From Lepidodermella squamata (Eukaryota; Animalia; Gastrotricha), in contig JBLDXI010000033.1 of the NCBI GenBank assembly GCA_047495785.1, forward strand, positions 1,116,001-1,180,000: a stretch of 64,000 nt of DNA, given 5' to 3'. The notes beneath the pieces were generated by a model that ran no database searches, was not told the DNA's origin, and was given only the letters and a program-made list of their open reading frames with translations. A program made the translations under genes and the position numbers. This document shows positions 2,009-41,900 of the stretch, one piece after another (position 1 is the stretch's first letter; each line of letters opens with the position of its first letter).

Positions 2009-2238
2009 CTAGACGCTTATATTAGGCCTTGGCGATATTAATAAAAAATCGGCAAATAAAATATGATGTTTTATATTGACATACAACATGTATAATACCC
2101 AGCTTATCATTTTTGTGCAGCTGTATAATAAAATTCCTTCAAGCGCATTTTTTTCCCACGTAATCTCGAGAACGTATCTAAAAACTTTGGCTTCCCCACA
2201 CGAGAGGTTATGATCATCCAACCTATCCAGGCTCAGTC

Positions 2239-4084: not shown

Positions 4085-4109
4085 CATTTTGTTTTAATAT
4101 TTTGAGTCT

Positions 4110-4230
4110 GGCCTTTACGCTATTTGCGCAACGACAAAAGAGCAAGGACATTAGAGCAAATTAGAGCCATGACCTTAAAAAGTTGCCCATTTGTCCTGCT
4201 CATTTGATGTTGGGCAAATAGCTTAAGACC
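4110..4230. repeat. Imperfect ~120 bp foldback (possible small MITE)
   Basis: Left arm ggcctttacgctatttgcgcaacgacaaaagagcaaggaca versus reverse complement of the right arm ggtcttaagctatttgcccaacatcaaatgagcaggaca. Confidence 0.6.
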
Positions 4231-4664
4231 GTAAAATGTTATGCCCGGTTTTTTTAAGTAATTTTGAGTTGATAATAAACACTACGTTGTCTTGTTTGTT
4301 GTCTGATGAGCGTGTTCGTGCAAGAAATTATCTTGTAAAGCGGTTGGGGGAGTATTAGAAGACTTGTTGCTTAACTTCTTGACATTTTCGAGAATTACCT
4401 ATACTTATGATATTATTAACCCTATTTTTGCAGCCCACCCCCATGTATGTAATGTAGGAATGAACAACTCGTGCTGAGCCTGACCGCTGTCCAATGCTGT
4501 AGGTACTGCAGAAGAACGAGTCAAGAAATTACAACACGCTCGTATTATTCATAGAAAAATTAATCTGCCATGTAAAAGGCTAAACCTTCCATACTATCTA
4601 ACTAGTCAAAAACAACTAGCGGTTTAGAAAAAAAATTTGACACTAAAATGTTTTTGTAGGTATC

Positions 4665-7600
4665 ATGTTGTTACGCCCGAATTTTATTTTTACCTTAATC
4701 CTCCTGGTCAAATGTGTTAATTGTCAATTTTACAACGCCGAAAATGGCCGGCAGTGTGCGGGCGGGGAGGTTATCAGCGACTCCTTGGCGACTCAAGGCC
4801 AGTGCACCGATGTCTGCGACAAAATTCGAAATTGCATTGGATTCGAGTGGAACGTCACATCGGAGACTTGTACGCCGAAAGCTGGCGATTGTCAAATTTC
4901 GCGAGACGATGGTTACATTTTTTACCGGAAACCAGGCTACGTTCCACGTGGGTTGAACCCCGAATTGAACAAAACCCAGGAGGATGAGAAGTATAAAATC
5001 AAACTCGGCTATCGATGCAGTGGTGGTTACAGTAAGGTGATAGGCGAGTCGAAATCTTCGACACAGGAATGTCGAGACTACTGCAATAACCGGCCTGATT
5101 GTTACGGATTCTCCTGGGATCTATCGTCCGGAACTTGTTACGCAACAACCGGCAGTTGCATCTACGAAAACTACCCTCAATTCGTGTTTTTCATTCGACC
5201 ATTATCAATTGGGAGAAAACTTCTCAACTCTGTCACGGCCCCTACGCTGGGCGAGAAGCCCGATCCGCGGAGAAATTATCAAGAAATCCGAGGGACATAT
5301 TGCACTGGTGGATCTAGTGTGGCTCTGTCGAACCCTGAAACTGAATTCATAAAATGTATGGAGGTTTGCGAACCGCCAGGTAACTGCATCGGGTTCAATT
5401 TCAACCGGAAAAACCGAAGTTGTACCGCGGTTTCTGTTGGCTGTGAGATGCGTCTTGATGACGGCTGGTTTTTCTATGGCAAAATCGCTCAGCTAATCAA
5501 AACTACTTCGACCACCCCCTCAAGTTTAGCAACGCCAGTTTTAGCCGGGAATTCAAGCCAGCGAGATTCAACTGCTTTTTATCTGGCTGTTGGTGGTACC
5601 CAATGCCGTGCAGATCCAGGGGCGATTCTTGCGAATGGGCAGGCTGTCGATTATTGCCGCCGGTCTTGTGACTTGATGAACAACTGTGTCGGCTTTAATT
5701 GGTATGCTGCCATTGAGGTTTGCTCCCTTGTCGCCCCGGGCTGCGAGGAAGCTCGAGATCCTGACTACGTCTACTACAGAAAGGAAGCGCCGCCCCAAAC
5801 CATAGGCCTACCACCGCGATTCGTTATGTCTTACCAGGACCAGGTCATATCGCGGATCAAGTGGACAGAAAGCAAAGTCCTGGAGGACTACCGGTCAGCT
5901 GTTGGATGGGCCTGTAAAGGGGATTTATCTTCGCAAATCGATGCATCTCAGAACAACGCCCAGATCTGCGCTTCTATTTGTAATTCAGCTCCGAAAGGGG
6001 CCTGTCAGGGCTTCACAGTCTACCCAGCTAGACGGCTTTGTGTTGTTCGAACTATCGAATGTAGGATTGAGCAAGAGGAAAGGGCGATTCTTTACCGAAG
6101 GAAGGAGATGACTTATGTAACCACCCCTCCTACAACGATATCAACAACCCCTGCGAGCACAACCTTACCCGGGTCTGCTACCATTCCTAGAGCAATCGAC
6201 GACGAGCCAGTGGATGATAGCTCGAAAAAGATAGTCTTCAACGGAGGGGATTTCAAAGCGTATTTAGCTAGAACTTGTATTGGGTCGAAGCCGATTTTCA
6301 AGCTGCAGATGTTTTTGTACGATTGTTTTGACCGGTGCGCTACTTACCCGGACTGTGTTGGTTTCACCTGGAATCTGGAGCTGAGTCAATGTACGGCCAC
6401 AAGCCAGGGCTGTATCGTTACTGATAGCAATGCCGAAAGCGTCTTCTACCTTAAAAATTCTCAGCGGGAGTATGTAGGGTTCAATTCTGAGCCATCGTTA
6501 CCGTTGGAACCAAGTGTTACCATTATGGCATCTTCTGTTGGCTCTACAATTACCCGGATTGCTACAAGCAGTTCAACTGATACAACAACTACTACTATTC
6601 CGACTTCTTCAACTGCCACTACTCAGCCTAACATTATGATAGGCAATGGTGGCTTCAAGGCCTTTGTCAACACCAAGTGCAAAGATAGCAGTGTAATCGC
6701 GCTGCCGTACCAAGACATAAACAAGTGCATCTCAGTTTGCGAATCAACACCCGGGTGTTACGGCATCAACTGGGAACCACTAGGCGAGTGCTCCGCGATC
6801 ACCAGGGGTTGCATGCCCGAGGAAGATAAGTCGACCCAGTTTTTGGTTCGAACATCTGATCCTAAGGATGACATCACCAAGTTTCTTGCTCAGATGCTTG
6901 AAATCATTAATCCTATCGGAGAGACAACGACGACTACGAGACGGAAGCTCATCAATCTTGGATCAGCTACAACCACTCGGAAAACCACGACTTGGAGTGA
7001 ATATTATGATAACGACGATGACACAACAATAAAGCCTACAACTCGCGGTACAAGTTCAGCGAGAACAAATTCTCAGAAGTTTACCACGGTTAATGATGAT
7101 GAATATTACGACTATACTGATGAGACAACTGTCGGCAGAAAAACGACGACTAGGCCGACTTCGTCAAGCTCTCAAACTGTTGGAACAACTACTACATCTC
7201 CAAAGCCGGCAAGCAGTCCGAAAACTTTGCCGACTTCATCAAGCCCTCAGACTGCTGGAACAACTGCTCCAACTCCGAAGGCGGTAAACAGTCCTTGGGA
7301 TGAGAAAAATGAGAATTACATGTCAGTCAGTGGGTTCCGCTGTGCAGAAGGAAAAAGTCAAACTATTGGCGAGGTTATCTATGATTTGGATATATGCTTC
7401 GAAACTTGTATCAAGGAAAAAACTTGCTTTGGATTCAATTATCGTCCTGATGAAGACCGATGTGCACTCAAAACCAGTGGCTGTGAGTACATCAGCGATA
7501 GGACTGCGGTTTTCTTCAAGAAAAAGGAAACGGCGGGAATAATTTTCAGAATTAGCTCGACTACTTCAACGAAGATACCTGAGACTACGATTTCAGTTGA

Positions 7601-8531
7601 GCCGGTAACTTCTAGAAGGACTACTAATGCAACTACGCAGAAAGCTACTACCACTACTACCACTACTACCACTACTCGCCCATCTACTCTGCCTTCGACT
7701 TCCCGAACTGTTCCAACAACCGCGAGCTCAACATCAACTACCACACGAACAAGTACTACTCCGACCACGACATCCAGGACAACTTCAACTACAATTACTA
7801 CGAGTCCTAGGACCTCTACTACGACTACGACTCCTAGAACCACTTCTACTACTACGACTGTTAGACCTACTACTACCACGACATCACCAACAACAACTAC
7901 AACAAGAGCAACAACGGCTACAACAAGAACAACGACAACTACAACAAGAGCAACTACAACTACAACAAGAGCAACTACAACTACAACGAGACCCAGGAGT
8001 ACCTCTACAGTTCCATCAACGACCTCTTTCACGACTTTGGGGCCTGTTTTAGGCGGTTACGGAATCAAGCCGAACTATTCACCAAATCTGCTGTACAAAT
8101 GCGCAGATGTTAATGATTTTAGCTTATTCGAACTTGTCACTACCCTTCGCGAGTGTTCGGAACTCTGTGACGTCATCGCAAGATGTGTCGGCTTCAATTG
8201 GCGGCCGGAAGAAAGGCAGTGTCGCGGTGTTACCGATAAATGCATATTAGCTTTCGATATGAATACGATTTTTTACCGGAACAACAAAACATTAGGCCTT
8301 TTGCGGGTTGCAACAACAAGATCATTGACGACTCGAACTACCACGACTACTACGCCGGAGAGTATTCTAGAACCGGCAACCCTTGTTGGAATCATTCGAA
8401 GGCCCCGGCCGACTCGATTTGTTCAAACTACTACTTCTGAGCGGCCTATGGTAGTACTGGGCACCCAACAGGAGCAAGAAGATCTTCCTGCGTATCTTAC
8501 GGAGGAAAATAACGCTAGCATGGAAGATTAA
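4665..8531 (+). CDS. Secreted multi-PAN/Apple-like mucin-like protein C (9 modules, long Thr/Ser tract), single coding exon
   Basis: 1288-aa ORF with signal peptide MLLRPNFIFTLILLVKCVNC, nine 6-Cys modules and a PTS-rich tract at ~7560-8040. Confidence 0.9.
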   Translation: MLLRPNFIFTLILLVKCVNCQFYNAENGRQCAGGEVISDSLATQGQCTDVCDKIRNCIGFEWNVTSETCTPKAGDCQISRDDGYIFYRKPGYVPRGLNPELNKTQEDEKYKIKLGYRCSGGYSKVIGESKSSTQECRDYCNNRPDCYGFSWDLSSGTCYATTGSCIYENYPQFVFFIRPLSIGRKLLNSVTAPTLGEKPDPRRNYQEIRGTYCTGGSSVALSNPETEFIKCMEVCEPPGNCIGFNFNRKNRSCTAVSVGCEMRLDDGWFFYGKIAQLIKTTSTTPSSLATPVLAGNSSQRDSTAFYLAVGGTQCRADPGAILANGQAVDYCRRSCDLMNNCVGFNWYAAIEVCSLVAPGCEEARDPDYVYYRKEAPPQTIGLPPRFVMSYQDQVISRIKWTESKVLEDYRSAVGWACKGDLSSQIDASQNNAQICASICNSAPKGACQGFTVYPARRLCVVRTIECRIEQEERAILYRRKEMTYVTTPPTTISTTPASTTLPGSATIPRAIDDEPVDDSSKKIVFNGGDFKAYLARTCIGSKPIFKLQMFLYDCFDRCATYPDCVGFTWNLELSQCTATSQGCIVTDSNAESVFYLKNSQREYVGFNSEPSLPLEPSVTIMASSVGSTITRIATSSSTDTTTTTIPTSSTATTQPNIMIGNGGFKAFVNTKCKDSSVIALPYQDINKCISVCESTPGCYGINWEPLGECSAITRGCMPEEDKSTQFLVRTSDPKDDITKFLAQMLEIINPIGETTTTTRRKLINLGSATTTRKTTTWSEYYDNDDDTTIKPTTRGTSSARTNSQKFTTVNDDEYYDYTDETTVGRKTTTRPTSSSSQTVGTTTTSPKPASSPKTLPTSSSPQTAGTTAPTPKAVNSPWDEKNENYMSVSGFRCAEGKSQTIGEVIYDLDICFETCIKEKTCFGFNYRPDEDRCALKTSGCEYISDRTAVFFKKKETAGIIFRISSTTSTKIPETTISVEPVTSRRTTNATTQKATTTTTTTTTTRPSTLPSTSRTVPTTASSTSTTTRTSTTPTTTSRTTSTTITTSPRTSTTTTTPRTTSTTTTVRPTTTTTSPTTTTTRATTATTRTTTTTTRATTTTTRATTTTTRPRSTSTVPSTTSFTTLGPVLGGYGIKPNYSPNLLYKCADVNDFSLFELVTTLRECSELCDVIARCVGFNWRPEERQCRGVTDKCILAFDMNTIFYRNNKTLGLLRVATTRSLTTRTTTTTTPESILEPATLVGIIRRPRPTRFVQTTTSERPMVVLGTQQEQEDLPAYLTEENNASMED

Positions 8532-8881
8532 GGCTGAAATATATTCTAATTTTTTCTATGATTTTAATTAGCCGCTGAAATTAATTTTAACCGCTTCAAC
8601 CGGTGAAATAAACCAATGATGGAAGAAGATTTTAACTAGTTTTGCTATCATTCATTGTATTACTCCCCGGGAGAACCTGTAGGTATGCGTCACCCGAGTG
8701 AAAATAATAACAAACACGTATGCGAAGTTAAATGCTGGATGTAACCTTGTATAAAGATGCACTGCCAACAATAGCTCGTGCGTAGCGTGCATTAATCTTG
8801 ATGATGTTGAGTTCCTTATGACTTTGTGGTTCACACTATAAAGAACAGTGTATTCTCGTGCCACCTTAAAAAATAATATCC

Positions 8882-11800
8882 ATGATCAGAATCATAATTT
8901 TATTGCTGATAGGTAAGTTCTAATTAACTCCCAAACTCACAGTCCACTTTTTGTCTCTTTTCAAGTTTATAAAGTTGGCGCGGAGCTCTACGACGCCGAG
9001 GAAGGTTGGAACTGTGTTGGCGGCGAGTATCTGGACGGCGAAGACCTAAGATCCCGAGGCGAATGCGCTGATTTTTGCGACAAACTCGAAAACTGCATTG
9101 GTTTTAACTGGTTTCAATTGAGATTGTCATGCGAGCCGAAACTCAACGACTGTTTACTGATTCGTGACCAAAGGGCGTATTTCTACAGAAAGCCCGAAAA
9201 TACCTCTGTTGTCGTCGATCCAACAAAGGAAAAGTATCGGATCAAAATCGGTTATGGATGTAACGGAGGGCCAAGTAAGCGGCTTGGCGAGCCACGGAAT
9301 AGTGTTGCCGAGTGTCAGGATGTCTGTAACAGCTACTTCGATTGCTACGGGTTCACCTGGGATGTAATGGCTGGTCGGTGTTCAGCGACAACTGGAGGAT
9401 GCATTTTCACTCAATACTCTCAAAGCGTCTTCTTTATCAGACCTGAGGGTATGGTCAATTACGTGAAACCTACCACGGAGAAACCTCAAAATTACCGAAA
9501 CAACTACCAGCCAAACCCTGGTTCGATTTGCTTAGGCGGGACTAGTGTTTTTTTGTCACAGTTCCAGAATGAAACAAGCAGATGCATGGAGACATGTGAG
9601 CCGCCAGGAAATTGCATCGGTTTCAACTACTTCAGGAGTAACCGGACTTGTGTCCCTATTTCTGTCGGATGTTCACTGCGGACATATGCTGAGGGTACTT
9701 TCTACAGTAAAATTGCTCAATTGATGAAAACACTCGGAACAACCCCGCCTAGAATCCTAACAGCCGCTACCAAGTCAAGCTTACAGCACAATCCTTCGGT
9801 GTATGTATCTGTCTTGAATACGAGATGTCGGGTGGATCCGAACGCAATTTTAACCACAAATCGGGCAATTGATGCTTGCAGGCTGATATGCGATGAAAGA
9901 TCCGACTGCATCGGTTTCAACTGGGTGGCTGCAAACAAAGTATGCAGCCTATTACCCCCTGGTTGCCTCGAAACCCAAGATCCTGATGTGGTCTACTACC
10001 GAAAGGAAGAAGCTCAACAATCCACGCCTTTGCCAGCAGTTTTCAACGCGCTATCCCTTCAAGATATTATGATTAGCCGAATCAAGTGGTCGCAAAGTAA
10101 TGTCCTGCCTGACTATCGAATGGGAAATGGGTGGTCATGTAACGGTGATTTATCAACGCAAATCGACGCCTCGCAGAACATGGCCCAGGCTTGTGCTCAA
10201 ATTTGCGACAACGCCCCACCTGGTCGTTGCCAGGGTTTTGTGGTATACCCGCTGAAGAGGCTATGCATAGTCAGGACTGTTGCGTGTAAAATTGAGCCGG
10301 AAGAAGGGGCGATACTTTACAGAAAAAGATGGTTGACCTACGTTACCGAACCTCCAAGACGGCAAACTACACTGTCCCCCTCCGCAATAACCGCACCGAG
10401 GCCATCCAATAGAGAGCCTGATTCTCTTACAGATAGAATGGTCGTAGAGGACACGCTGTTCGACGCTCATCTCAGCGCCATTTGTTTTGGGTCAAAAGTG
10501 CTCTTCAAGCTGAAGATGAGCCTTCTAGATTGCATGGATCGATGCAGTGAGAAGTTTGAGTGTGTCGGGTTCAATTGGAACCTCGAGACCGGCAGCTGCA
10601 ATGAAATGGCTCCTCGCTGCGTGGTTGTCGACACAACCCCTGAGAATGTATTCTACCTGAAAAACGCCAGGAAGAATGATGTGAGCATCCACGGTGATTT
10701 GACAACTACACAACGAACGTTTAGACCTCCGAATGGCTACCGACCGAATATGAACATGGGATGCACTGGCAGCAATGTGATCGGGAGCGAATCCTACGAT
10801 ATCAATCAATGCATTTGGATTTGCGATGGATCTGACAATTGCTTCGGAATCAATTGGATACCCCAAGGACTTTGCTCGGCCGTTGCTAAAGGGTGTGAAT
10901 CTGAAGGGGATATGATCTCGCATTTACTCGTGAAAACCGACGATCCTGAGGATGACATCAGAGTCTTTATAAGTGCAATGAATAGGACCACAACAACTGG
11001 GGCACCAACTCCTCCGTCCGACGTGATTGTGGTTGCTCAATTCCCGAACTATTGGCTCTACCCTCAAAGGCGATGCGTGAGTACCGATGAAGAGGGAACA
11101 ATAGGAGACCCTATAGTGGATTTGAACCAGTGCTTTGTGACATGTAACTCCTTAATGGATTGTCAGGGCTTCAACTGGCGATTGGATGAGAATCGTTGCT
11201 TACTCCAGGCTAGAGGTTGTCAGGTTACTGGTGAAAAAATCGCGCTTTACTATGAGAAGCGATTTCAGCCGACTGTGAAAACGACTAGGACAACCAGAGC
11301 TTCGACTACGCCCACTACGACTACGACGACGACTACGACGACTTCTGCTACCACTACCACTACCACTACTACTGAGGCTACAATGGCTCCAACTGCCAGA
11401 ACAACCCCAGCTATTACCAGGCCTACAGTCACTTTTACAAACAGACCACCAGTTTTCGCTACGCAAAGCAGGTTCTCATCGTCAACTTCATTCTCCACTT
11501 TTAGGCCAACGACAGGCACTACCGCAATGTGGAAATTCACTGTTCCAGATGAGTATTGGGACAAACACTTTAATTATTCACCTTTCGTCCGCTACCGTTG
11601 CGAGGCTGGGAAAAGTGAAGTTGTTGGAGACGTCAAACTGAGCCTGGATGAATGTTTTGAAATGTGTGAGCAACTGCCGACATGTGACGGCTTCAACTTT
11701 CGAATCTCCACCTCGAGCTGCATAGCATGGACGAAAGGCTGTGCGTTCACAAAAGACAACAATTCGATTCATTATCGTAGAATCTTTTACACAACGACCA

Positions 11801-12015
11801 CGAGGTCTACTACCACAACGACCACGACTACCGAGGCCCCTAGTACTACCTCTACGACAAGAAGAAGCACTACGACTACGGCTTTAGAAACCACCGAGCC
11901 AGAAACACTTGAGCCTGAGACGACCACGCGGACGACATTAAGGCAGCGAATTACTACTACTACTACTACACCTCCGGTAGCGACTCGCAGGCGACGAACC
12001 ACGCCGCCAAAGTAA
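8882..12015 (+). CDS. Secreted multi-PAN/Apple-like mucin-like protein D (9 modules); exons 8882-8912, 8966-12015
   Basis: ATG 8882, MIRIIILLLIV/YKVGA signal; phase-1 intron 8913-8965 in frame with ORF 9118-12015; colinear with protein C. Confidence 0.88.
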
Positions 12016-13910: not shown

Positions 13911-16084
13911 TCACGATGAATTGCTAGTTTGCGACAAAACACTCGTTGCCGGAAGGAATGATGAATTTTTACGTGGCGGCACTTGCGGCGGCTGCAGTTC
14001 AACGTTAACCGATTGCGCCTTCACCAGTGTTTTAGCCGGATTCGGCGATCTCGGCGCTAGTTCTTTTGATGGTGATGATGAGTTCGATGGGAAGAACGAA
14101 TTGCTGCCTGACGTGAAGGCCGGGCTTTTAGGTGATAGACCGGGTTTGTTAGGAGATGCTGACGATGATGCTATTTTAGGATGGGCCGATAGCGGAGGAC
14201 TCTTCTCGAAAGAACTCGGCTTGCTGCTATTCGCGCTCCGAGAGGGTGAAGCTAAGGATAGGCTAAGGGAAGTGAGTGGTAGCTCAGCAACTCTACCCCT
14301 TCTATTCGGCCCATCCTCCATCGTTGAAGATGTCTTTCGAAACATATTCCTCAGTCCAGATTTCAACTTCTGCCCTATAGCGTTTTTGTTTTTAGAATTG
14401 CGAACAAATTTTCCGTCGTGAGTTGCATCAAAGGTACGACTGTTAGCTGCCTCCTCTGCTAATTCAGCGGGGATGTTAGGCGCAGATTTGACTAAAGATC
14501 GTACAGACGGTATGTTGAGGGTAGGCGAAGATCGACTTGAATGCGCCAAAGCTTCAGCGGCACGATTCCCACCCGGGCTATTTGCATCGTTTAGGGAGGA
14601 AGATAATTGCGACTCGTCTATGGAACTAGAATCTTTAACTGATACTAAAAACGAGATTGATAGTGATTGATGAGACGGGGATGGAAAGCACTTACAAGAA
14701 ATGTTTAGACGATTGAAAACACAATGCAGACCAGCGTTAATTGATGTGTTTACGGATTCGTCTTCAGGCACGTATGACTGGCTAGTGTATCGCTCAGCTG
14801 ATTCGCCGTCAAAGAACCATTTCGACTGCGCAGACGTATTAATTGTACCAATTAATTCAATAATTATTAGATTAATGTGATTGGAATCCTAAAGGGCTAA
14901 TTGCCAAGTGACAGTTGTCTTAAGGAGTGTTTCGAGTTGGAGCGATCCCATGAGTTTTTAATTAAGCTTCTAATCGATCAAATTAATTCTTTAAAAGAGC
15001 CCTTTTACGTCTTTTCTAAAGGTGGGGTAAGTGTCAACAGCTTACATGGGTTAAAATAGTTTGAATAATGGTGCATTGGTCCATGGCATCGGCCGCACAT
15101 TGGTTGATGTCAGCGGCTGGGCTGCGGCGAGCGACCGGCGATCGCAGCGGCGACGACCCGAGCGACGGCACATCAGTCGAGTGACCGGCACTCAGCTGAT
15201 TTTGCACGACAACGGGCTTGCGCATAAGGGTTGGTCCGAAAATTATCGACAAGTTCTGCACGTCCATTTTGTTGTGCTCAGCGTGCGTCGCTAGCAGCGC
15301 CAAGTGATTAGCTACGTACTTCAAAGTGTCCTGATTGCATCGCGGCATTTTTTGCAGGCACTTTTTCAAGGCAATCATCCGCGATCGATTGCATTTCAAG
15401 CGATTAGCCGTAATAAAGGCTTCGTAGGAAGCTGTATAAAAACAAGAGATCAAAAACGGACGCGCTTGATCGTAGAATGACTTACAAAACGGGAACAAAG
15501 GGTCGGGCAACTCACGAAAAAACTGTTTCAAGGCAGATGTGTAAGCAGCTACGTCACATCGACTCCCAGGCGGAGCTTTAATATAGACCTCATAGTTGTA
15601 CTTAGTAGTGTCCCATCGCTTCAGGATCGACCCTACGGAGGAACTGTTACCAGGCACCCTGTAAAGACCTACAAAATCCGCTCCGTGCTTTTCGATCATC
15701 CGCGCGCAGAAATCAACAAAAGCTGGCACGTTCTAGAATTGAAAAAAATGTTAAGGAAGATTTTTTTGAAGTTAATTAGCAACTGACGGCGTTATCTGTA
15801 GAAGGATGGCATTTACTCAGTTCTTTCCCGAGTTCGGTTGGGGATTGCTGGGATGATTGCTGACTTTTCGAGCTTTTGAATAAATGGTGCCTTGAATGGC
15901 CGTTTGTTAACCGTTTCGATTGCTGGTTTTGCCATTCTTCAATTTTCGCATCGTGCCCATCTACGTCTCCATTCGCTGGCGAAAGATCTGACGGGCTCTT
16001 GTTGCCAGAACTGTTGTTTGATGCCGAGAAGACAGGTAGGTGCCAGCCACTCATTTTAATTGACACAAAATTAGCCGAATTCAA
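13911..16084 (-). CDS. RhoGAP-domain protein with Ser/Pro-rich disordered C-terminus
   Basis: VPAFVDFC..GLYRVPGNS (arginine finger), SALKQFFRELPDPLFP, NKMDVQNLSIIFGPTLMR; introns 15733-15787, 15432-15485, 14826-15045 and probably 14645-14695; the true 5' end may lie further upstream. Confidence 0.9.
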
Positions 16085-21509: not shown

Positions 21510-23579
21510 ATGAAGGCACTAAGACGCTTTGTTCGAGGCAAGAGTACTGAAGCATTAAGGCGAGATAGACACAGGAGGCATTCAATCAACGATCCGTCCG
21601 AACAACCCGGGGAAATTCTCGATGCTGGCGTAGCAACTTCCCACCAAGTTCGCGGCTTCATCGTCCGCCTTGAGACGCTACTCGCCGAAACTGATCACAG
21701 GTCGAAAGTCGCATTTAAAAATCTGGAAATTCGCCACCTTCTCGGCAAAATTCTGGCATTATCGAAGTCAAACCATCACATATTGACGGAAAATGCAGAG
21801 ATACACAGTTGTCTGCCGAAGGTATTAGGAAAATGCGTCGTTGGTATCGATGCAGCAACCGTGCTGGAAGACAAAGAAGCGCTTGATTTTACGAGGAAAG
21901 TCACCGATATCATCGCAAATTACTCCGACTCCTGCGAGCTTTTCTCCCGAACCCTGGCAACTGAAGTTCAAGGATTACTCAAATGGATCCTGGAGATCGT
22001 TGGCTCAAAGTCAATACACAGCTCTTTAACTGTCAAGAAATCTAAAGTAATTTTCTTTAAGGAGGATTTTTTCCATAATTATTCTGAATCCTAGGAAATC
22101 GAAGATCTAGTCGAAAATTGCCTCATGTCCCTTCACAACATAACGAAATTTCCTGAAACAATTCATGCGTTTAAGAAGTTCGAAAGTCTTCACGTAAGTC
22201 TACCAATTGAGATTGTAATTTTTCAAAATTTCGGCAAATTTTAGGCTGTGAAATTTTACCTCTGCTGTCCTTACGATATCTTACTATGCCTCGCAATGAT
22301 TTTCAGCGCCCGCATCGTTGAAGACGATGAAAGTCGACTTCTAGCCGAGGATTTGGGCGTCACTACTTCCTTTATCAAAGCCCTTAGTACCGCTCTTCAA
22401 GATTCGACCGGGAAAACTTACCTACCCGGCGAGTTATCAGCAGCCGAAATCGCTAATGGAATGCGGCTTCTGTTCATTCGAGATTCAAATAAAGCGAAAT
22501 TCGTCGCCGAAGGGGTTCTGCCCCTCCTGGAGAAGATGGTCATGTCGGAGAATGAGGAGGAGCAAATGGCGTCAATTCAGTGCTTATGGACCCTTTCATT
22601 CAGTGAAATTGAACGAGTCAAAATTGTCGCTATGTCGGAAATTCTTAGCCAGCTAAAATTGATAAGTATAACCTCGCAAAATCGAACTCTTCGCGTCAAA
22701 GCGACAAACGCTTTGGTTTTCATTAAAAACGGCAAGACCGGTCTATTAAAGCCAAGACCGTCGCTGCCTTCAGTTTCATCGGCGGATTCCAAGGTCGACG
22801 AAGCAACACGACCGCCGGTAATTTTTATCAGTTACTGTCAAAAGCAGCAACCGATGGTGTTGAGGATTCGAGAATCGCTTCGAGCAGCTAATTACGAGTG
22901 TTGGATTGATACCGAAGAAATGCATGGCTCGCTGCTTCAAGCAATGGCCGATGCGATTGAACGATGCTCTGTCGCGTTGATGTGCTACTCCGAGGACTAT
23001 AAAAAGTCGAACAATTGCCGATGCGAGGCTGAGTATATATTTCAGCTAAAAAAGCCGATTGTCCCCGTGAAAATGCAGAAACAATACCAGCCGGACGGTT
23101 GGCTAGGAATCATCATTGGAGCTAGGTTTTACATCGACATGTCCCTAGCGAATATTCCTTATGTCGAAGCGTCGCAGAAATTATGCGCGGAAATAACGAA
23201 TCAAATGCAAATTGCGAACAAACTTAACAAAGAATCTTCGAAATTGGTGGTACATGCAGTTTCTAAACCACCGCAAAAAACCGCTGTTTTCGCTGCCTGG
23301 TCAAATGCAGACGTCCAAAAGTGGCTTCGAGAAATTTCTTTGTTAGTTTTTTGTTATTCCTTGGGTATAAATAAAACTATGATTTTTCACAGATCTTCCC
23401 CGGTTCTTGAGAAGCTGGATGGGAACTTGCTGTGGACTCTTCACGAAATGAAAATAAAGGCTCCCGAGTCGTATTATTCTGTTCTTTCGAGATCTCTATT
23501 TGAAGCAACAGGAGATCTGCACAATTTGCTGCAACATATTTCTGCCCTTGATAGGCTATGGCAAACAATTGAAGAGTGA
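21510..23579 (+). CDS. ARM-like repeat / TIR (TIR_2-type) / SAM-like protein 1; exons 21510-22046, 22095-22193, 22245-23341, 23393-23579
   Basis: ARM-type motifs (LMSLHNI, GVLPLL..QCLWTLSF), TIR box IFISY..WID..AIE..SEDYKKSNNCRCEAEY..PIVPV..DGWLG, SAM-like WSNADVQKWL; splice phases consistent. Confidence 0.88.
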
Positions 23580-23886
23580 TAAAAAAATAATAAAGCATAA
23601 TTTATTTTTATTCAATAATTTTACAAATTAAAAGTGGCATTAGTATGATTAATAGTTCAAACATCGAAGCTGCTACTTGAGTCTGTTTTTTGCCTCGGTG
23701 ATATGTTTGCATTAATTTTTCGTCACGCACTATATAACGCCGGGTGAAGGTGACACATGCATTTTTTTTTTACTTTTTAAGAGCAGCATACCACACGGCT
23801 TGATCTTGTGATCTTGTGCGGCATTTTATACTAGCCAAGAGTAATATATAACGCCGTGTAATTTTTTTCTAATACTTTCAACTAAC

Positions 23887-25859
23887 ATGGATAGCCGAGT
23901 AGCTAATTCTCAACAAGTGCGGCAGCTTATTCTGAAATTGGAGTCCGCCGTCGGGGTTATCCACTCGAAAATTCCAAAAGATGTACGGAAAGACGAAAGT
24001 ATCTGGGACCTTCTACGACAAGTCGCTGGGCTATCAAAGCTACACAACGAACTAATCAGTGAAAATGCTGAGATTAACAGTTGCCTACCGAAAATTCTCG
24101 AAAAATGCGTAATCGGCATTGATGCAGCTATCCTACTTGAAGATGCTAAGGCGCGGCAGTTTGCCCAACTGGTTATCGATATTATATCGAATTATTCCGA
24201 CCACTGCGAGCTCTTCTCTCGAACCCTAGCTTCGGAAGCGCTAGGTCTGATCAAATGGCTGCTGGAAATTGTCAGCTCAAAATCTATTCAAATCGTCATG
24301 AAAACTAATAAGGCAGGCAAATGATTAATTATTCTTCGGCTGTTTTATTCTAAATCAAAAAAATCTCTCATTGTTAAGGATATTCATGCTATTGTAGAGG
24401 GCTGTCTGATGTCCCTGCACAACGTTACCAAGTACCCTGAAACATGGCAATCATTCAAGGCCTTTCAATCCATTTACGTGAGTTGGCAATGAGCAATTTA
24501 AATCCAATTTTCAAATTTTAATTTCAGTCCGTAAAATTTTATATGACGTACGATGACGATAAACTGCTGTGCCTTGCGATGATTTTCGCCGCCAGAATCG
24601 TCGAGGATTCCCAAAGTGTCCGGCTAGTTGAAGAGCCCGGTGTCGTGTCATCCTTTGTGAAAGCCTTGGGTTCAACATTGGAAGATACCACTGGAAAACA
24701 TTACCTACCTGGTGAACTATCCCCGGCAGAAATCGCCGATGGAATGCGGCTGTTGCTGATTACCGACGCGAATAAATCGAAATTTGTCGAGGAGGGTGTG
24801 TTGCCCCTGCTGGAGAAGATGCTTTCGTCGAACATTGTTGAAGAACAACTCGCTGCGGTTCAAAACTTGTGGACCCTTGCGTTTGGCGAGAAGGAGCGGG
24901 CGAAGATTAATGAGCAACCGAAAATCCTTACCCAACTTCAATTCATCTCCGAAAATGCTGAAAACAACTCGTTGAAGCTCCGAGCTTCTAACGCCAAGGT
25001 TTTCATCGAACACGGGTACCAAATGACGAAAACTGAGACGGAAAAGCCGGTTGAAACAGAGGGAGATGAAGCGCCGAAACCTCCGTTGATTTTCATAAGT
25101 TATTGCCAGCGACAACAGCCGATGGTTTTGCGAATTCGAGAGTCACTTCGACAGGCCAATTACGACTGCTGGATCGACACCGAAGCCATGCATGGCTCAA
25201 CCCTTCAAGCAATGGCTGATGCTATCGAGCGGTGTACAGTCGCGCTGATGTGTTATTCCGAGGACTACAAAAAGTCGAATAACTGCCGATCTGAGGCTGA
25301 ATACATTTTCCAAACGAAGAAACCGATTGTCCCGGTGAAAATGAATAAGGACTACAACCCTGATGGCTGGCTGGGAATCATCATTGGCGCTAGATTTTAC
25401 ATCGACATGTCTCTTGCCCATATTCCTTACATCGAGGCGATTCAAAAGTTGTGTGCTGAGATTACGAATCAGCTGCATATTGTGAATAAAAAACAGGCGG
25501 AAATCGATGGCACAACTGCAGTAGCTGTCCCAACTCCTCAGGCCATTGCCGCTTTGAAAAAATCGGGTGTCTTTTCATCTTGGTCGAACGATGACGTTAA
25601 GAAGTGGCTCAAAGAAATATCGCTGTATGAATTTCAACTAAATTTTAAACTTGGGTATAATTTTCATTTTTTTAGGAATTCCGAAGCTTTCGAAACTCTG
25701 GACGGAAATTTGTTGTGGACACTGTTTGAGATGAAATCAAAAGCTCCTGAATCCTACTACAACGTCGTGACCAAGTACTTGGGGCCAAAAGCCAGCGATC
25801 TGTCCAGCCTCCTGACTCATTTATCAGCTCTGGATCGACTCTGGCAAACTGTTGAGTAG
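23887..25859 (+). CDS. ARM-like repeat / TIR / SAM-like protein 2; exons 23887-24312, 24379-24477, 24528-25624, 25676-25859
   Basis: Tandem paralog with the same intron positions (99-nt exon 2); first donor inferred to be GC from homology. Confidence 0.87.
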
Positions 25860-35965: not shown

Positions 35966-38900
35966 TTACACGCTATGTAACACCTGTGATGCTTTTTTCA
36001 CTTTCGCCTGAGCTGTGCCGAATAAATGTTCATCACTCTGCACGTTCGGCCCTACGCATATCGGCGTATTTGACCATTTCCCGTTTGGTAGACAGCTGAT
36101 GAATTCGGGCCCTTCGAGTTGCGCACCAGGTTGCCGACACGAAAATTTCACTCGGTCGCCAACTATCGAATCTCGACCAGCGAAATTCGGCTGATTCCGA
36201 CTGTTAGGTATCACAGGTATCCTGCCACAACTCCCTGGGAAAAAATCGTTAATAAAATAAAAATATTGATAAGTTTAATAATTGACTCACGTATGCATTT
36301 AGGCGCTTGGCTCCAGGTTCCATCATGACCGCAAACCGATTTTAGCGGTCCTAATAGGACATGTCCAGGGTGGCAGAAGTAGAGCACTGACTCGCCCTCG
36401 GTATACGTAGTCGATGAACTCGTGTTCGAGCTGTTATTAGCAGCCGATGAAGCAACAGTGGCGGCTACGTGGTGTTGATGCGAGGCTGAAGTTCCATGCC
36501 CGAAGGACGAGCTTCGAATCACTCGGGCGTTGATAACCTCTGGCGGTTGGGGACAGGGCCGGCGGCAAACGGCGACTGGAGGCGCCCATCGGCCGTCGAT
36601 ACCGCAACTTGCCATGTTAGGGCCGGAGAGGGAGACGCCGGATTCGCAGCCTAAAATGACTTTATCGCCAGGTTTCGAATTGCCGTAGTACAACTTGATA
36701 ATCTTGCTGTTTGGACTCGGTGGGAATTCGCCACAACCAGACACTAAAGAAAAAAGAATGAGTTTTTTAAATAAAATAAATTATAAAAAAATACTTCAAT
36801 ACTTAATTGAAAATTTGAAAATGTTGAATTTTATGGAAAAATTTCAAATTTCAAATTTAAATTTCAAAAATTGTAGACAAATCCAACTTAAAATTTCAAA
36901 AAAATTCTAGAGCAAATGATCACTTACTTTCAAAGGTGTAAGCCATGTAAATGAAAGCATCAGTCAAATCCGAGGTCGATCGAACTTGTACCAGCAAATC
37001 TGTTGTATTCGTCAGTATCGTGACATTATGCTGCAAGCCGCAAAGCACGGCATAGGGCTGCAGCACCTCTGCCATCGCATCCGTAATTGTCACGTTATCA
37101 GTCATACAGCTCTTCACGCCTGTTTCATTCGCCAGCTTCATGTAGTCGATCGTTAGCTTGACGTAGTGAAGCGGCGGCGCTTTGATTATCCACCGGCAAA
37201 TGCGCGCCGGGTTCGGCCATTCGATGATACCCGATGTCGAATCAGACGCCTCGGTAACATCCGTACACTCCTTAACAGAAATCTCCGTAGTAGTCGTGGT
37301 AGGTTCTGTTGTCGTAGTCGTCGTTGTAGTCGTACTCGGGGTGGTCGTAGTCGTCGTAGTCGGCGTTGTAGTTGTAGTACTTGTCGTAGTCGTTGTTGGA
37401 GTGGTCGTCGTAGTCGTAGTTCTGGTTGTAGTAGTCGTAGTCGAGGTTGAGGTCGAACTTTCATTATCGTCGTGAATGTGGTAGAAATTTTCGTCGTCAT
37501 TATTCGCCGGCTTTGTCGTCGAGGTCGTCATCGCTTTCCGCCTCCCTTCCTTCTTCCTCAAATGCTCCATCTGCTTCCGCATATTTTGGTAGTGATGACT
37601 CATTATCTCACCAATCGGCCTGTTCGCCAGGTGTTTCGGTAGATTAGCCAGGTCGATGACGGGGATAGTTTCATTCGCATTGTCGGTATCATTCAGCGAC
37701 TGGTTTTCCAACTCAGCGCTACTCGCCGAACTGTCGACGGACGAAATCGTGAAAATTATCGGCTCCATCTTCTGCGAGCCATGCGCCTGTTTGTGGCGAA
37801 GTCGCGCCTGGGCTGGCGTCGTCATCCGGGTAGTTTCAACCGATGGCTTCGTCACTAGACAATCAACAATTTTGTAGTGAAATTTGAAGCCTTCTCCCTC
37901 CTGCACGTGGTTCGTATTGAAGACGGTCGTCAAGTAATTTGAGGTGGATTGGACTGGTAGCAGGGTGTCTTTAGTCTCATCCGAGCCGCAATATTCAGCG
38001 ACGACCGCGGAAAATACCGAACTGCCGTCGTGAATGGTGACCCGATCAGCGTCAGTGCAGGGTGACAGCCTGACGTAGTCAGCCTGGAGCCGGATGCAAC
38101 GACCCGGGTACGCCTGGATGGTCCAGTAGCAGACATCGTTTGGGAAGTAAGTCTTCGACGAATGGCGGCTCGGGGACGTGAAATACCCGCTGTCGTTGCC
38201 TAGGGTGTAAGCCCGGCCTAAACAGGGTTCGATCAAAGGCCCGACATGGTCCTCCCCGGGCAACGTGGTCGTAGTTTCCGGGATAGCCTCGGCACACCTC
38301 GGCGGCTGGGTCCATTTGCCATCAGGTAGGCAGACAATCCTACGCTGGCCCTCGATTCTATACCCCTCCTGGCAGCTGTAAATCGCAGTTAAAACGCCTC
38401 GAATCGAATGATCGAATCTGATAATTGCGTTAGCAACAACAGGCGGGTAGGAGCAGAAAATCGTAGCCGGGTCATTCGACGGAGCCGTGTCGTTCGACAT
38501 CGGCATCGGGGGTAGGGATGGATCGCCGGTTCCAATCGTGCCGTTTGACTCGTGAAGCGTTTCCAGGGTCGACGAACTCGGCATCGGACTCATCTGGCCC
38601 TCGAAATTGTCGTTTTGAGTCGGTTTCAAACACTCAGGCACCGTCGACCAATCGCCGCTTTCCATGCATGTGATCACCCTGTTTCCGACCAATTTATGGT
38701 TAGATGATAGGCACTGGTACCAGGCGGTCGCGCCAACCCGGACTGAGTTGAAAACGACATAGGCATTAGGCACCCTAGGCGGGCGGCCGCACATTCGTTC
38801 AACGCATTGCGGGAATTTGGTCCAAGTCAGGTTACTCTGGCAGTAGACATTAGCCGGGGCGCCGCTGATGACGTAGCCAGGCGCGCATCGAACTTCAGCC

Positions 38901-41900
38901 CTTGAGTGGGGCAGCAGCTCGTTATACCAAACCATTCCGTTTTGAATGTAAGGCGGAACAGGGCATGTTAAGGGGGCCTGTGTTGTCGTAGCCTGCCTTT
39001 CATCCAAATGAAACGACAAGGGCGAATTGCTGTTCGCTATGAAGGAGTTACTCTCGACCAGGCCGAGAAGTGGATCGCGTTCGTAGTCGTTGAAATCAGC
39101 GCTATTCGCCTCGCCGTCGTAGTAATTGAGCGGGTACGGCGTGCAGCGAGGTGGCCGGGTCCACGTTAAATCATTCTGGCAACGAATAGCTGGTTCGCCC
39201 TTGAGTTGGAACCCGGGTATGCACGAATACGTGACCTGAGTTCCGATCTTCAAATTCGTCCATCGGCTCATTGATGAGTATTCGATTTCAGGCGGCAGAT
39301 CGCACGACGTTTCGAGGCATTTCAGCGACGTTTGGCTCCAGGTTCCATTTTGGAGGCAAATCAGCCGGATCATGGTACCAGGTCGGTCGGACGACGGCCG
39401 GCACCGATGGAGTGAAAACATCGCGTCACCCTTGGGGGTCGATCCGTAGTGCTCCAGAGTCGCTCCAGGGATGTTCGGCGGAGGTGGGCATTTATTACCC
39501 ATGAGCGCTAAAAAAATAAAAAAAAAATTGAAACTAAAATTAAAATTGAATTAAAAAAAAATATAAAAAAAGAATTGAAATTAAATTAGTAAAAATAAAT
39601 TAAAAAAATAATTAAAAATTAAAATTAAATTTAAATTTAAAAATTAAATAAAAGAAAAATTTAAATTTAAAAAAATTACGTTGACACTTCGGGATTTTAG
39701 TCCAGATGCCCGGTGGTACACATGTGATGGTACCGGGGCCTTGAAGCTGGAACCCGGATGAACAGGTGTAAATGGCTTGATCTCCAACCTCCCCAGATCC
39801 GTTGTACATCATAGCCGCATTTGAGATAGGCGGCGGCCTCTCGCAAAGTTTGCGAGCTGAATTGAGAAAAAGAAATGAATTTACTACTTTTGTTCAAAGT
39901 CTGATTTATTATCAACTAACGTTTGCACGCTGGTGTTTGAGACCACAGGCCATTTTTACCGCAAATAATTTCGTCATTACCAGTCAAGCTGTACCCGTCA
40001 TCACACGTGTACAGCGCTTTCGCCCCGTAGGCGATTCCGGAATAGGAAACCACGGCGTTGTCGATGATTGGCGGCTGGCCGCATGAAAACCCGCCGACCA
40101 CCTCCTCACACCTGGGCAGGACCGACCATTTACCATCCGCACCACAGGTCACACTGCGATTTCCCTCCATTTTGTAATCCTCGTCGCAGGTATAGACCAC
40201 AACAGTTCCAGGCTTTTGACTACCTGATGTTCGCATAGTCGCGTGGTCGACCTGAGGCGTAGGTGGGCAGGTTACGAATTCAATCGGAATTTCAACAACA
40301 GGCCGGGCTAAAATCGCGTCATCCATCCGACTGCTTATCATCATAACTGGCTGTGTCGGTAACGGGATGCATTCAGGCGGGCTGGTCCAGCGCCCGTCCC
40401 GTCGGCAAACAATTTTTTCCGGGCCATTACGGCCGAAACCAGGTAGACACGTGTAGATCGCCTCGGAATCAATTTTCCCAATACCGTCGAAGCGAACCTC
40501 GCTGAATTGAATTTCTGGCGGTTTGCCGCATGGCGGCGGTTCGAGGCACATCGGCGGCTCGGACCAGCGACCAGTTTCTAGGCAAGTTATCGTATCCTCT
40601 CCCTCCATATCAAACGCCTCATCGCAGGCGTAAGTCGCGTTTGAGCCGACAGTTAGTGTTGAGTAGTTCATTTTACCGTTTTGAATCTCAGACGGGCGAG
40701 GGCACGTGACTTCGAGGCATTGAGGCGGCGCGGTCCATAGCAACGAATCACCCATGCAGTAGGCCTTCTTACTACCCCGCATCTGAGTCCTGTTCAGGCA
40801 TCGGTAAATCGCGACGCTGCCTGGAGCTGTTGAGTTGAATTCGACCTCGGAATGGGCGATCCTAGGCGGTTTCCCGCAGCCTGTTTGCAGTAAACAATGC
40901 GGCGGCTCCTCCCAGGTGCCGTTTTCCAGGCATTTCGAAACCTGCCGTCCGATTAATTGCAGCTTCATCTCGCCCTTAGCCAAGCATTTGTACACAGCGA
41001 GAGATCCGACAGTTGTCAACGAATAGAAAACCTCGCCGTGTTCGATGTTAGGCGGCGGCGGGCACGACTTGTAAGCGTCAATGCAGCGGATCGTCGGTTT
41101 TTCCCATTGATTAGCGCCGATACAGTGGATAACGGGTGTTCCTGAGCTGGTTAAACCGTCGGCGCAGGTGTAGATGGCGATCGAATCGCGACCAGTGTCG
41201 GAGTAGTGGTAGGTGGCACCGGGAATTTCGGGAGGAGGTCCGCAGAGTTCGTACCGAGAAACCTCGACACCCTCGTAATCGGCAGGGTCAAAATTATCAT
41301 CCAGGGAATTCATCACCTTAAAAAGCCAAAAAGGATCTGGTTAGAATATCAAGGTGAAAATTCATTTTTCCGAATTTTAATTTTTTTTATTAATTTGAAA
41401 TATTTTCAAAATTTTCAAATAATTTTAAATTTCGAAATTTTAAATACTGACAAAAATCCCGTTCCAATGCTCTATTTTTCCTTACCTTTCCAGACTCATC
41501 ATATTCCGGCTCGAAATAGGGAGTCGTAGTGACCGTAGTTGTAGGCGTAGTTCTCGTTGTTTTCGGCCTTGTCGTAGTCGTTGTAGTCGGCTTGGGAGTA
41601 GTTGTCGTCGTAGTAGTGGTAGTTGAAGTCGTGGTACTCGTCGTAGTCGACGTACTTGTCGTAGCCGGCTCAAATCTCGGACCAGTCGATCCGACATACC
41701 GCGACGATTTGAACATATTCTTAACCAGGCCTGATCCTCGCGAACCAGCCGCCGCTAAATTCTCTTTCGGCACCGGCAGGGGTTTGCAATACGGCGGCTC
41801 ACTCCAATCGCCATCTGGCAAGCAATCGACGATTTTTGATCCAATTAATTCATAGTTATTGAAACACTGGTAGATCGCTAACGAGCCGGGTAGCAGCGAC

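Follow-up and report, generated by a model that had tools for sequence, protein, structure and literature searches.

Gene models, splicing and transcription at the locus

Positions 21510-25859 of the window, a 64,000-nucleotide stretch of Lepidodermella squamata contig JBLDXI010000033.1, run exactly from the ATG of one gene to the stop codon of a second, with both genes, and all features described below, on the + strand (gene 1, 21510-23579, four exons; gene 2, 23887-25859, four exons). By count, the products are 639 aa for gene 1 and 601 aa for gene 2. Exon borders were set by combining the reading frame with the GT..AG joints that contigs of run X1 show. Contigs of this run that skip the intron were found for every intron of both genes, showing that run X1 is RNA; across the intergenic bins (23556-23863) its cover was zero, with run X2, which is DNA, covering all of them.

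Exon 1 of gene 1 (21510..22046; 179 codons), placed by frame, translation and an X1 joint with its donor at 22046/22047, encodes a basic N-terminal extension of 36 residues, which gene 2 is without, and then an alpha-solenoid. The 'LHN' motif of the family armadillo (ARM) region sits in exon 2 (22095..22193; 33 codons; joints 22046>22095 and 22193>22245, both GT..AG), as read from the translation against the family consensus. Exon 3 (22245..23341; 1097 nt) was interpreted by Pfam TIR_2 and by alignment to the family, and it encodes, in order, canonical ARM repeats, a linker, a TIR_2 domain with the motif NCRCEAEY, a second linker and the first SAM helix. The translation of exon 4 (23393..23579; joint 23341>23393, GT..AG) completes the SAM-like domain and reaches the stop codon, and an AATAAA poly(A) signal follows at 23589.

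Gene 2 is built in the same order. Its exon 1 (23887..24312; 142 codons) encodes an ARM/HEAT-type alpha-solenoid, as judged from an AF2 model, and is followed by a 66 nt intron (24313..24378) that is best read as GC..AG: the X1 joint was reported at 24308/24375 with 5 ambiguous bases, and a shift by 4 gives GC..AG with the frame kept. Exon 2 (24379..24477; 33 codons; joint 24477>24528, GT..AG) is 58% identical to exon 2 of gene 1. Exon 3 (24528..25624; 1097 nt), assigned by AF2 model, VIA matches and Pfam TIR_2, is 65% identical to its counterpart in gene 1 when used as a tblastn query, and in its model ARM repeats (residues 1-165) precede the TIR (187-327, with NCRSEAEY) and the first SAM helix. 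Exon 4 (25676..25859; joint 25624>25676, GT..AG), assigned by comparing the family tail profile with SAM domains, again completes the SAM-like domain and carries the stop codon, with AATAAA at 25894. A bacterial or contaminant source is ruled out by the spliceosomal introns. The neighbouring genes, none of them obviously immune, have products with PAN, Sushi/CUB and RhoGAP domains.

Membership of a widespread invertebrate family

The two genes belong to an already listed invertebrate ARM-TIR(-SAM) family. With clustering at 50% identity, at least 150 clusters matched over about the full length with E < 1e-98, and with the limit set at E <= 1e-30 the number of matching proteins was 1828, which bears out the expectation of an earlier note on this DNA that similar architectures exist in other invertebrates. 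Members were found in echinoderms, hemichordates, amphioxus, molluscs, annelids, nemerteans and rotifers. Almost every one carries the label "uncharacterized", and the full-length members matched came from sea urchin, hemichordates, amphioxus, molluscs, a nemertean and rotifers. BLASTP with exon 3 matched 156/156 family proteins (best 1e-60 to 1e-66). The window proteins share with the catalogued 'ARM-TIR' proteins, which are widespread in marine invertebrates and absent from vertebrates, an N-terminal armadillo region, a TIR domain and an apparently cytosolic location; the C-terminal SAM of the family is usually missed by single-sequence Pfam scans. Gerdol et al. 2017 (Dev Comp Immunol 70:145) are said to count ARM-TIR among the 'ecTIR-DC' families. 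ARM-TIR proteins have already been catalogued in the Aplysia immunome (PMC9334734), and literature searches found no biochemical test of them.

Identity between the gastrotrich pair and any sampled family member is only 35-41%. In a quick IQ-TREE family tree the two genes are sisters (SH-aLRT 99) and nest, on a long branch, in a 99%-supported clade with P0002, P0083 and P0115. P0002 and P0115 are relatives from metagenome contigs. Besides its long branch, the pair differs from the family in three nearly invariant TIR residues, which are changed in the window TIRs (His>Leu/Val, Trp>Gln and Gly>Asn).

Domain composition of the encoded proteins

Each protein starts with an armadillo-repeat solenoid of ~340-375 residues. 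With Pfam on single exons, exon 1 stayed without a match in both genes and Arm was not matched in the window proteins, so the ARM assignment was made through structure and family profiles. An AF2 model of gene 2 from exon 3 onward (mean pLDDT 85.6) was aligned over its residues 1-165 to designed ARM proteins and beta-catenin (VIA Z 17-18, rmsd 2.4-3.0 A, ~150 residues), with importin-alpha also among the matches at Z 17-18. The model of gene 2 exon 1 was all helical (mean pLDDT 87.6); its VIA matches were all of ARM/HEAT type, the best of them, WapL (Z 11.7) and APC-ARM (Z 11.0), lying below the decisive level for helical repeats, Foldseek with this model gave no match at E <= 0.001, and BLASTP of exon 1 against the family proteins gave essentially no matches. 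The family ARM profile matched designed ARM (5e-48), Vac8 (7e-38) and beta-catenin (1e-23), all canonical ARM proteins, SARM1 being absent among the 60 matches listed, and the family N-terminal profile matched designed ARM proteins at 4e-7.

The TIR domain was recognised directly by Pfam TIR_2 (PF13676; gene 1, E 3.8e-22; gene 2, E 2e-21). In VIA the gene 2 TIR model matched Hydra TRR-2 (Z 17.7), SPARTA (Z 17.1) and the SARM1 TIR (Z 16.4; rmsd 2.1 A over 123 residues), and signalling TIRs (Hydra TRR-2, MyD88) were matched as well as enzymatic ones. Against solved structures the family TIR profile scored best with Cat1 (7.6e-9), followed by RPS4 (2e-4), TIR-1 (3e-4), SARM1 (3e-3) and MyD88 (4e-3), and a defence library (PADLOC) yielded weak matches to bSEFIR, TIR-SAVED and ThsB, the latter two at ~1e-3 to 1e-7. 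By sequence the family TIR appears to lie closer to prokaryotic defence TIRs, Cat1 being its best solved match, and SPARTA TIR-APAZ ranks among the best matches in structure (Z 16-17). Cat1, TIR-SAVED, ThsB and SPARTA are active when oligomerised, and their partners are CARF, SAVED and Argonaute modules, whereas the window genes are spliced animal genes with ARM and SAM. No death domain of the kind found next to the TIR in MyD88 was matched in any exon translation (Pfam E <= 1).

A single SAM-like domain at the C-terminus is supported at the level of the family. The window proteins alone gave no significant SAM match in Pfam (SAM_2 at E 0.21), and their SAM was modelled only with a 17-residue intron read-through; the assignment comes from profiles. 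Pfam SAM_1, SAM_2 or SAM_3 was matched by 20-24/50 family tails; a profile of all 50 matched PDB SAM domains throughout the 60 matches listed, including the SARM1 SAM (2.3e-5) and the polymer-forming TEL SAM, with the SMS1 SAM and not that of SARM1 as the best full-length SAM match among the matches listed. The tails follow the pattern W..DV..WL ... DG..L ... APE.[FY]Y, and those of the window proteins align to the family tails after intron removal. The X1 joints, Pfam TIR_2, the AF2 model and the family profiles together bear out the earlier description of the two genes as a tandem ARM-TIR-SAM pair.

Divergence of the two copies

No other part of the proteins comes near the TIR in conservation. 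Between gene 1 and gene 2 the TIR differs at 15/131 aligned residues (88.5% identity), close to the ~14 of ~128 that the earlier note had counted by hand, and the domain-wise identities between the copies (ARM parts 52-61%, SAM parts 63-69%) agree with its statement that the TIR is less diverged than the ARM region. Against other family members the window TIR is 34-52% identical and the ARM part 11-31%.

Synonymous sites between the copies are saturated (pS ~0.8; ARM dN 0.31-0.38), so dN/dS per domain was not computable and polymorphism counts were used instead. Between samples, coding variants were 33 synonymous versus 5 non-synonymous (33/38; from 40 variants listed of ~100), and codons 22-30 of gene 1 exon 1 carried synonymous variants only. 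Both genes are under purifying selection, with the ARM region under laxer constraint; the 'diversifying sensors' proposed earlier find no counterpart here, as the synonymous saturation and the 33 versus 5 variants give no sign of diversifying selection. Pseudogenes are ruled out, both genes being spliced, expressed and under purifying selection. The two genes are best explained as old, lineage-specific tandem duplicates.

A candidate NADase active site

The residues that are nearly invariant in the family cluster at the position of the TIR NADase active site, comprising S-Y in beta-A, D..M.G in the BB-loop and S..CR.EAEY in alpha-C. The last of these, present as S..CRxEAEY in most family members, reads NCRCEAEY in gene 1 and NCRSEAEY in gene 2. 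Alignment pairs the first Glu of CR[CS]EAE with the catalytic Glu of three TIR NADases (Cat1, RPS4 and C. elegans TIR-1), an equivalence based on HMMER alignments and not on residue-level superposition in fold tools. The retention of a catalytic-type Glu that had been read from the sequence is thus upheld in both genes. In the gene 2 model this residue, Glu 256, lies on helix alpha-C (251-262) in blocks of mean pLDDT 95-97, and across the family it is Glu in 49/51 TIRs. The same Glu is also present in non-catalytic TLR TIRs, making it necessary but not sufficient for catalysis.

Both window genes keep the BB-loop Asp and Gly corresponding to SARM1 D594 and G601, together with a Ser six residues before the Glu; family-wide, the Asp is invariant, the Gly is kept in 92% and the Ser in 98%. 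D594 and G601 are important in SARM1 (PMC8266388). The nicotinamide-site ring is held by W638 and F603 in SARM1 and by W146 and I119 in the flax M protein (bioRxiv 10.64898/2026.02.03.703613). Alignment to TIR-1 and the family columns place Asn at the W638 equivalent (four residues before the Glu, where Cat1 has Trp) and Thr at the F603 equivalent (G-S-T-L, BB loop), and the equivalents of SARM1 R569/R570 are Cys-Gln in the window proteins and Gln-Trp in the family. As far as sequence can indicate, NAD+ cleavage by the ARM-TIR-SAM pair is plausible.

Functional interpretation

Our preferred reading, held with moderate confidence, is that the pair represents an oligomerisation-gated cytosolic TIR effector of a widespread invertebrate family, for which cleavage of NAD+ is plausible. 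The SAM domain would mediate self-association, a role borrowed by analogy from SARM1, and the ARM solenoid would bind a partner or ligand and may restrain the TIR, autoinhibition again being suggested by SARM1. Clustering of the TIRs would then switch on the output, for which we favour NAD(P)+ cleavage or an NAD-derived signal via the conserved alpha-C Glu, in a binding pocket that would differ from those of SARM1 and plant TIRs. The data establish gene structure, expression, the folds of the domains, membership of the family and the pattern of conservation, while oligomerisation, autoinhibition, enzymatic activity and a role in immunity or cell death are inferred.

The same proteins could instead act as non-enzymatic adaptors or scaffolds, making TIR-TIR contacts with Toll-like or IL-1R-like receptors or adaptors while the ARM and SAM domains recruit partners, which we regard as rather unlikely. 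Surveys have proposed adaptor or regulator roles for ARM-TIR-type proteins (PMC9334734, PMC6321704, PMC6836662), and such a role would fit the lack of the aromatic and Arg residues found in the NAD+ site of SARM1, a TIR model that matches Hydra TRR-2 (Z 17.7) and MyD88 no less well than enzymatic TIRs, and a MyD88 sequence score (4e-3) close to that of SARM1. Yet S..CR.EAEY and the residues of the BB loop are kept across phyla more strictly than a loose interaction surface would usually require, several of the best sequence matches are enzymatic (Cat1, RPS4, TIR-1, TIR-SAVED, ThsB), and Pfam found neither a death domain nor another known adaptor module.

An enzyme with a substrate or product unlike those of SARM1, acting on another nucleotide, directed at nucleic acids or working as a signal-only cyclase, and possibly with a non-immune (neuronal or developmental) role, seems improbable. 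Nucleic-acid-directed activity has been reported for some plant TIRs. The Glu is kept here while the pocket residues differ from those of SARM1 and plant TIRs; the absence of obviously immune flanking genes also suits this explanation, as does the observation that TIR relatedness does not predict the product, with several animal TIR clades unstudied (PMC13142454). Against it, an alternative substrate is without direct evidence.

SARM1, dSarm and TIR-1 share with the window proteins the ARM, SAM and TIR_2 domain types, the Glu (paired in alignment with E642 of SARM1 and the catalytic Glu of TIR-1) and the Asp and Gly of the BB loop, and the SARM1 ARM region is of similar size. The order here is ARM-TIR-SAM with one SAM, however, against ARM-SAM-SAM-TIR in SARM1; the ARM region is of the beta-catenin/Vac8 type, unlike that of SARM1; the TIR sequence is no closer to SARM1 than to MyD88; and the equivalents of W638, F603 and R569/R570 are not conserved. 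Of the earlier description as 'domain-permuted SARM1-like', the ARM-TIR-SAM architecture stands, but the relationship does not, given the ARM and TIR profiles and the single SAM. SARM1 orthology is ruled out by domain order and profile scores, and the resemblance is one of domain composition only. That the family is a true SARM1 derivative with its TIR moved in front of the SAM is very improbable: the three shared domain types, the top Foldseek rank of full-length TIR-1 and SARM1 with the whole gene 2 model (E 1.3e-4, but rmsd 25-31 A), the SARM1 SAM match to the family SAM profile and the SARM1 clusters listed at 0.90-0.92 by an atlas feature search speak for it, whereas the ARM profile leads to canonical ARM proteins (1e-23 to 5e-48) with no SARM1 among the 60 listed, the TIR profile puts SARM1 below Cat1 and RPS4 and level with MyD88, there is one SAM and no tandem pair, and the best full-length SAM match among those listed is SMS1.

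Significance for animal TIR signalling

An atlas of TIR domains, available as a preprint (PMC13142454), points to several animal TIR clades that are frequent in non-model invertebrates yet entirely unstudied. The present analysis corrects the earlier view in two respects, with no rearranged SARM1 and no sign of diversifying selection at this locus. We know of no animal TIR protein other than SARM1 that is known as an enzyme. If the family members are plain adaptors, the finding is an ordinary one. The large family, the cross-phylum conservation at the NADase-site position and the self-association domain nevertheless make it a good candidate for animal NAD+-cleaving TIR signalling beyond SARM1. 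We tentatively suggest, as possible though short of probable, that the ARM-TIR-SAM family is a second animal enzymatic TIR lineage, independent of SARM1, switched on through SAM polymerisation and with a remodelled pocket (Asn and Thr for Trp and Phe) that could give another NAD-derived product or accept another nucleotide, present in many invertebrate phyla and lost in vertebrates and, to our knowledge, from insect and nematode model species. The locus itself contributes two gene models, both confirmed and expressed, from an animal that has been little sampled, and as ancient tandem paralogues they offer a clean example of which parts of these proteins are constrained.

Two spliced genes lie in tandem

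Two + strand genes, gene 1 (21510-23579) and gene 2 (23887-25859), occupy the stretch at 21510-25859 at a spacing of 307 bp (23580-23886); their exons were placed by the joints in the contigs of sequencing run X1 together with the reading frame. Gene 1 has exons at 21510-22046, 22095-22193, 22245-23341 and 23393-23579, and gene 2 at 23887-24312, 24379-24477, 24528-25624 and 25676-25859 (all +), giving by count proteins of 639 aa and 601 aa, respectively. The six short introns were skipped by the X1 contigs at exactly the places that the frame requires, and the two intergenic bins spanning 23556-23863 had zero X1 contig cover; contigs of a second run, X2, covered introns and spacer equally. X1 therefore behaves as RNA and X2 as DNA. 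Five of the introns are GT..AG introns of 48-51 nt each. The first intron of gene 2 measures 66 nt; its joint in the X1 contigs has 5 ambiguous bases, and the best placement is 24313-24378, with GC..AG ends. The counterpart in gene 1 has GT..AG ends and is shorter by 18 nt. Both genes have an exon 3 of 1097 nt, intron positions and phases all agree, and an AATAAA follows each stop (23589 for gene 1, 25894 for gene 2). A tblastn search found no third copy in the window, and no loose contig ends were seen in the comparison with X1 and X2 contigs.

At its N-terminus, gene 1 carries a 36-residue basic extension (21510-21617) with an RRHS motif, which is lacking in gene 2. As the listed variants at codons 22-30 are all synonymous, this extension is coding, and it may serve in targeting or regulation.

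Both proteins combine ARM, TIR and SAM-like parts

The earlier note had read both genes as encoding ARM, TIR and SAM-like parts, and this was borne out by the spliced X1 contigs, Pfam TIR_2, structural models and profiles of the family, that is, of the invertebrate ARM-TIR(-SAM) proteins matching the pair. Search queries and structural models were taken from single exons or from uninterrupted stretches of the window. TIR_2, which matches nearly every TIR clade (PMC13142454), was found with E 3.8e-22 in gene 1 and 2e-21 in gene 2. The stretch window:24528-25856, which runs from exon 3 of gene 2 through the in-frame third intron, read as 17 additional residues, into exon 4, was folded with a 97-sequence family alignment at a mean pLDDT of 85.6. 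Residues 185-314 of this model align structurally to TIR domains, including those of Hydra TRR-2 (Z 17.7, rmsd 2.0 A over 122 residues), SPARTA TIR-APAZ (Z 17.1, 2.3 A over 130 residues) and SARM1 (Z 16.4, 2.1 A over 123 residues). PADLOC models gave weak matches of the window proteins to bSEFIR, TIR-SAVED and ThsB.

Upstream of the TIR, model residues 1-165 align to designed armadillo proteins, beta-catenin and importin-alpha (Z 17-18, rmsd 2.4-3.0 A, about 150 residues), and an ARM profile of 50 family members matched designed ARM (5e-48), Vac8 (7e-38), ODAD2/ARMC4 (3e-28) and beta-catenin (1e-23). Gene 2 exon 1, folded with family N-termini, was modelled as an all-helical solenoid (pLDDT 87.6) whose best structural matches were the ARM/HEAT proteins WapL (Z 11.7) and APC-ARM (Z 11.0), followed by mDia, CNOT9 and CTNNBL1, Z scores this low being indecisive for helical repeats. 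The family N-terminal profile matches designed ARM proteins (4e-7), ZYG11B, Vac8 and APC. Given these model and profile matches, the N-terminal ~340-375 residues form an armadillo-type solenoid throughout, degenerate in its opening part but canonical close to the TIR.

In the window proteins by themselves, Pfam SAM_2 reached E 0.21 only, and the window SAM was modelled only with intron read-through. After intron removal the window tails align to family tails, and for a profile of 50 such tails the 60 listed PDB matches are SAM domains throughout, with SMS1 SAM at 5.6e-6 (about full length), SARM1 SAM at 2.3e-5, and Shank and TEL/ETV6 also among them. Individually, 20-24 of the 50 family tails match Pfam SAM_1, SAM_2 or SAM_3.

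The likeness to SARM1 is one of composition

The pair is SARM1-like in composition only. The description of the proteins as a domain-permuted SARM1-like module held for the domains present, but order and the ARM and TIR profile scores spoke against a closer likeness. Unlike SARM1, the window proteins are ordered ARM-TIR-SAM with a single SAM, and SARM1 was absent among the 60 matches listed for the family ARM profile. The family TIR profile matched Cat1 (E 7.6e-9), RPS4 (2e-4) and C. elegans TIR-1 (3e-4) ahead of human SARM1 (3e-3) and MyD88 (4e-3). Full-length TIR-1 and SARM1 were ranked first by Foldseek for the three-domain model, but with an E of only 1.3e-4 and an rmsd of 25-31 A, so this match reflects shared domain types and not a shared arrangement. 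According to a TIR-domain atlas posted as a preprint in 2026, the SARM1 TIR falls within a bacterial lineage, apart from other animal TIRs (PMC13142454).

The ARM regions are under laxer constraint

Between gene 1 and gene 2, identity was 52.5% in exon 1 (dN 0.38), 57.6% in exon 2 (dN 0.34), 60.6% in the ARM part of exon 3 (dN 0.31), 88.5% in the TIR (15/131 residues differ; dN 0.08) and 63-69% in the SAM (dN 0.18-0.32), in agreement with the earlier observation that the TIR is more conserved than the ARM region. Synonymous differences are saturated, at ~0.8 in almost every segment, so the duplication is old; throughout, dS exceeds dN by a wide margin. The 40 differences of the window from runs X1 and X2 that had the best support included 38 coding ones, 33 of them synonymous; the 5 replacements lay in ARM or linkers, with none in the TIR. 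The proposal that the ARM regions are diversifying sensors is therefore not upheld, dN and the 33/38 synonymous variants pointing to laxer constraint. Other family members are 34-52% identical to the window proteins in the TIR and 11-31% in the ARM part; judged by sequence identity, the gradient holds across phyla too.

Surroundings of the pair

No obviously immune genes were seen near the pair in the window. Upstream, four large PAN-domain ORFs of 556, 562, 1288 and 965 aa (338-12015, +; PAN_1 E 1e-16 to 2e-21) look like a tandem family of PAN/apple-domain proteins. The ORF at 15034-15729 (-) encodes a RhoGAP domain in full (E 2.2e-35) and neighbours an ORF at 13911-14771 without a Pfam match. 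Downstream, on the other strand, runs a series of Sushi (CCP) and CUB ORFs, one also with PAN (36211-49274, -); these ORFs are probably exons of one very large gene, or of a few, encoding extracellular proteins.

The pair belongs to a widespread invertebrate family

A word-indexed search found relatives of no better than 36% identity, in sea urchin, the hemichordate Glandiceps, snails and a rotifer, several with Arm matches above threshold and weak SAM matches. Exhaustive profile search yielded 1828 proteins at E <= 1e-30, and all 150 matches listed had E < 1e-98, most spanning nearly the whole profile. Named members, almost all labelled 'uncharacterized protein', come from Dimorphilus (annelid), Saccoglossus, Glandiceps, Branchiostoma (3 species) and Tubulanus (nemertean), to which a feature search of the atlas added clusters from molluscs and rotifers. 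As a lead only, two Arm+TIR_2+SAM_2 atlas clusters (feature score 0.92) have few labelled members, mostly green algae (Chlorophyta); an ARM-TIR-SAM-like architecture may exist outside animals.

In a quick tree, gene 1 pairs with gene 2 (SH-aLRT 99). A long stem leads to the pair, whose well-supported clade also contains three metagenome-contig proteins and is adjoined by the nemertean sequence. One of the three, P0115, ranks among the closest relatives of the pair and is directly preceded by another ARM/TIR_2 gene of the same orientation on metagenome contig ERZ27333047:k141_428686 (L002:1832-4007 and L002:6001-8160), so tandem pairs recur in the family. P0115 and another relative, P0002, were each called as one uninterrupted ORF.

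Immune-gene surveys name ARM-TIR-type proteins without assigning a function, as with the 11 'ARM-TIR' genes counted in the Aplysia immunome (PMC9334734), and an expressed TIR-SAM combination is recorded in amphioxus (PMC2575513). 'Evolutionarily conserved TIR-domain-containing' families without vertebrate members are attributed to Gerdol et al. 2017 in the placozoan and bivalve papers that cite it, and the TIR atlas holds several wholly uncharacterised animal clades (PMC13142454). Our literature searches turned up no paper on the biochemistry of ARM-TIR proteins. Gene 1 and gene 2 are new and divergent additions to an invertebrate family that is catalogued but functionally uncharacterised.

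Prospects for NADase activity

The alpha-C motif reads NCRCEAEY in gene 1 and NCRSEAEY in gene 2, and the suggestion that it retains the catalytic Glu agrees with the alignments to Cat1, RPS4 and TIR-1, in which the catalytic position is matched by the first Glu of CR[CS]EAE. This residue sits on helix alpha-C of the confident model, and a Glu occupies the equivalent position in 49/51 family TIRs. Nearly invariant in the family are S-Y (strand A), W.D...M.G (BB-loop region) and S..CR.EAEY (alpha-C), including the equivalents of SARM1 Y568, D594 and G601, mutation of which lowers activity (PMC8266388). The nicotinamide-site ring is held by F603/I119, L607/L123 and W638/W146 in SARM1 and the flax M protein TIR, respectively (bioRxiv 10.64898/2026.02.03.703613). 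By contrast, the TIR-1 alignment places Thr, Met and Asn of the family at the SARM1 F603, L607 and W638 positions, and where SARM1 has R569/R570, the family carries Gln-Trp and the window genes Cys-Gln. The same Glu is also present in non-enzymatic TLR TIRs. With the Glu and active-site residues kept on one side, and the changed ring and Arg positions and the Glu of TLR TIRs on the other, the prospects that the family would cleave NAD(P)+, possibly with an altered pocket, are about evenly balanced. For the family as a whole, it is a worthwhile question whether animals have in these proteins a second lineage of enzymatic TIRs.
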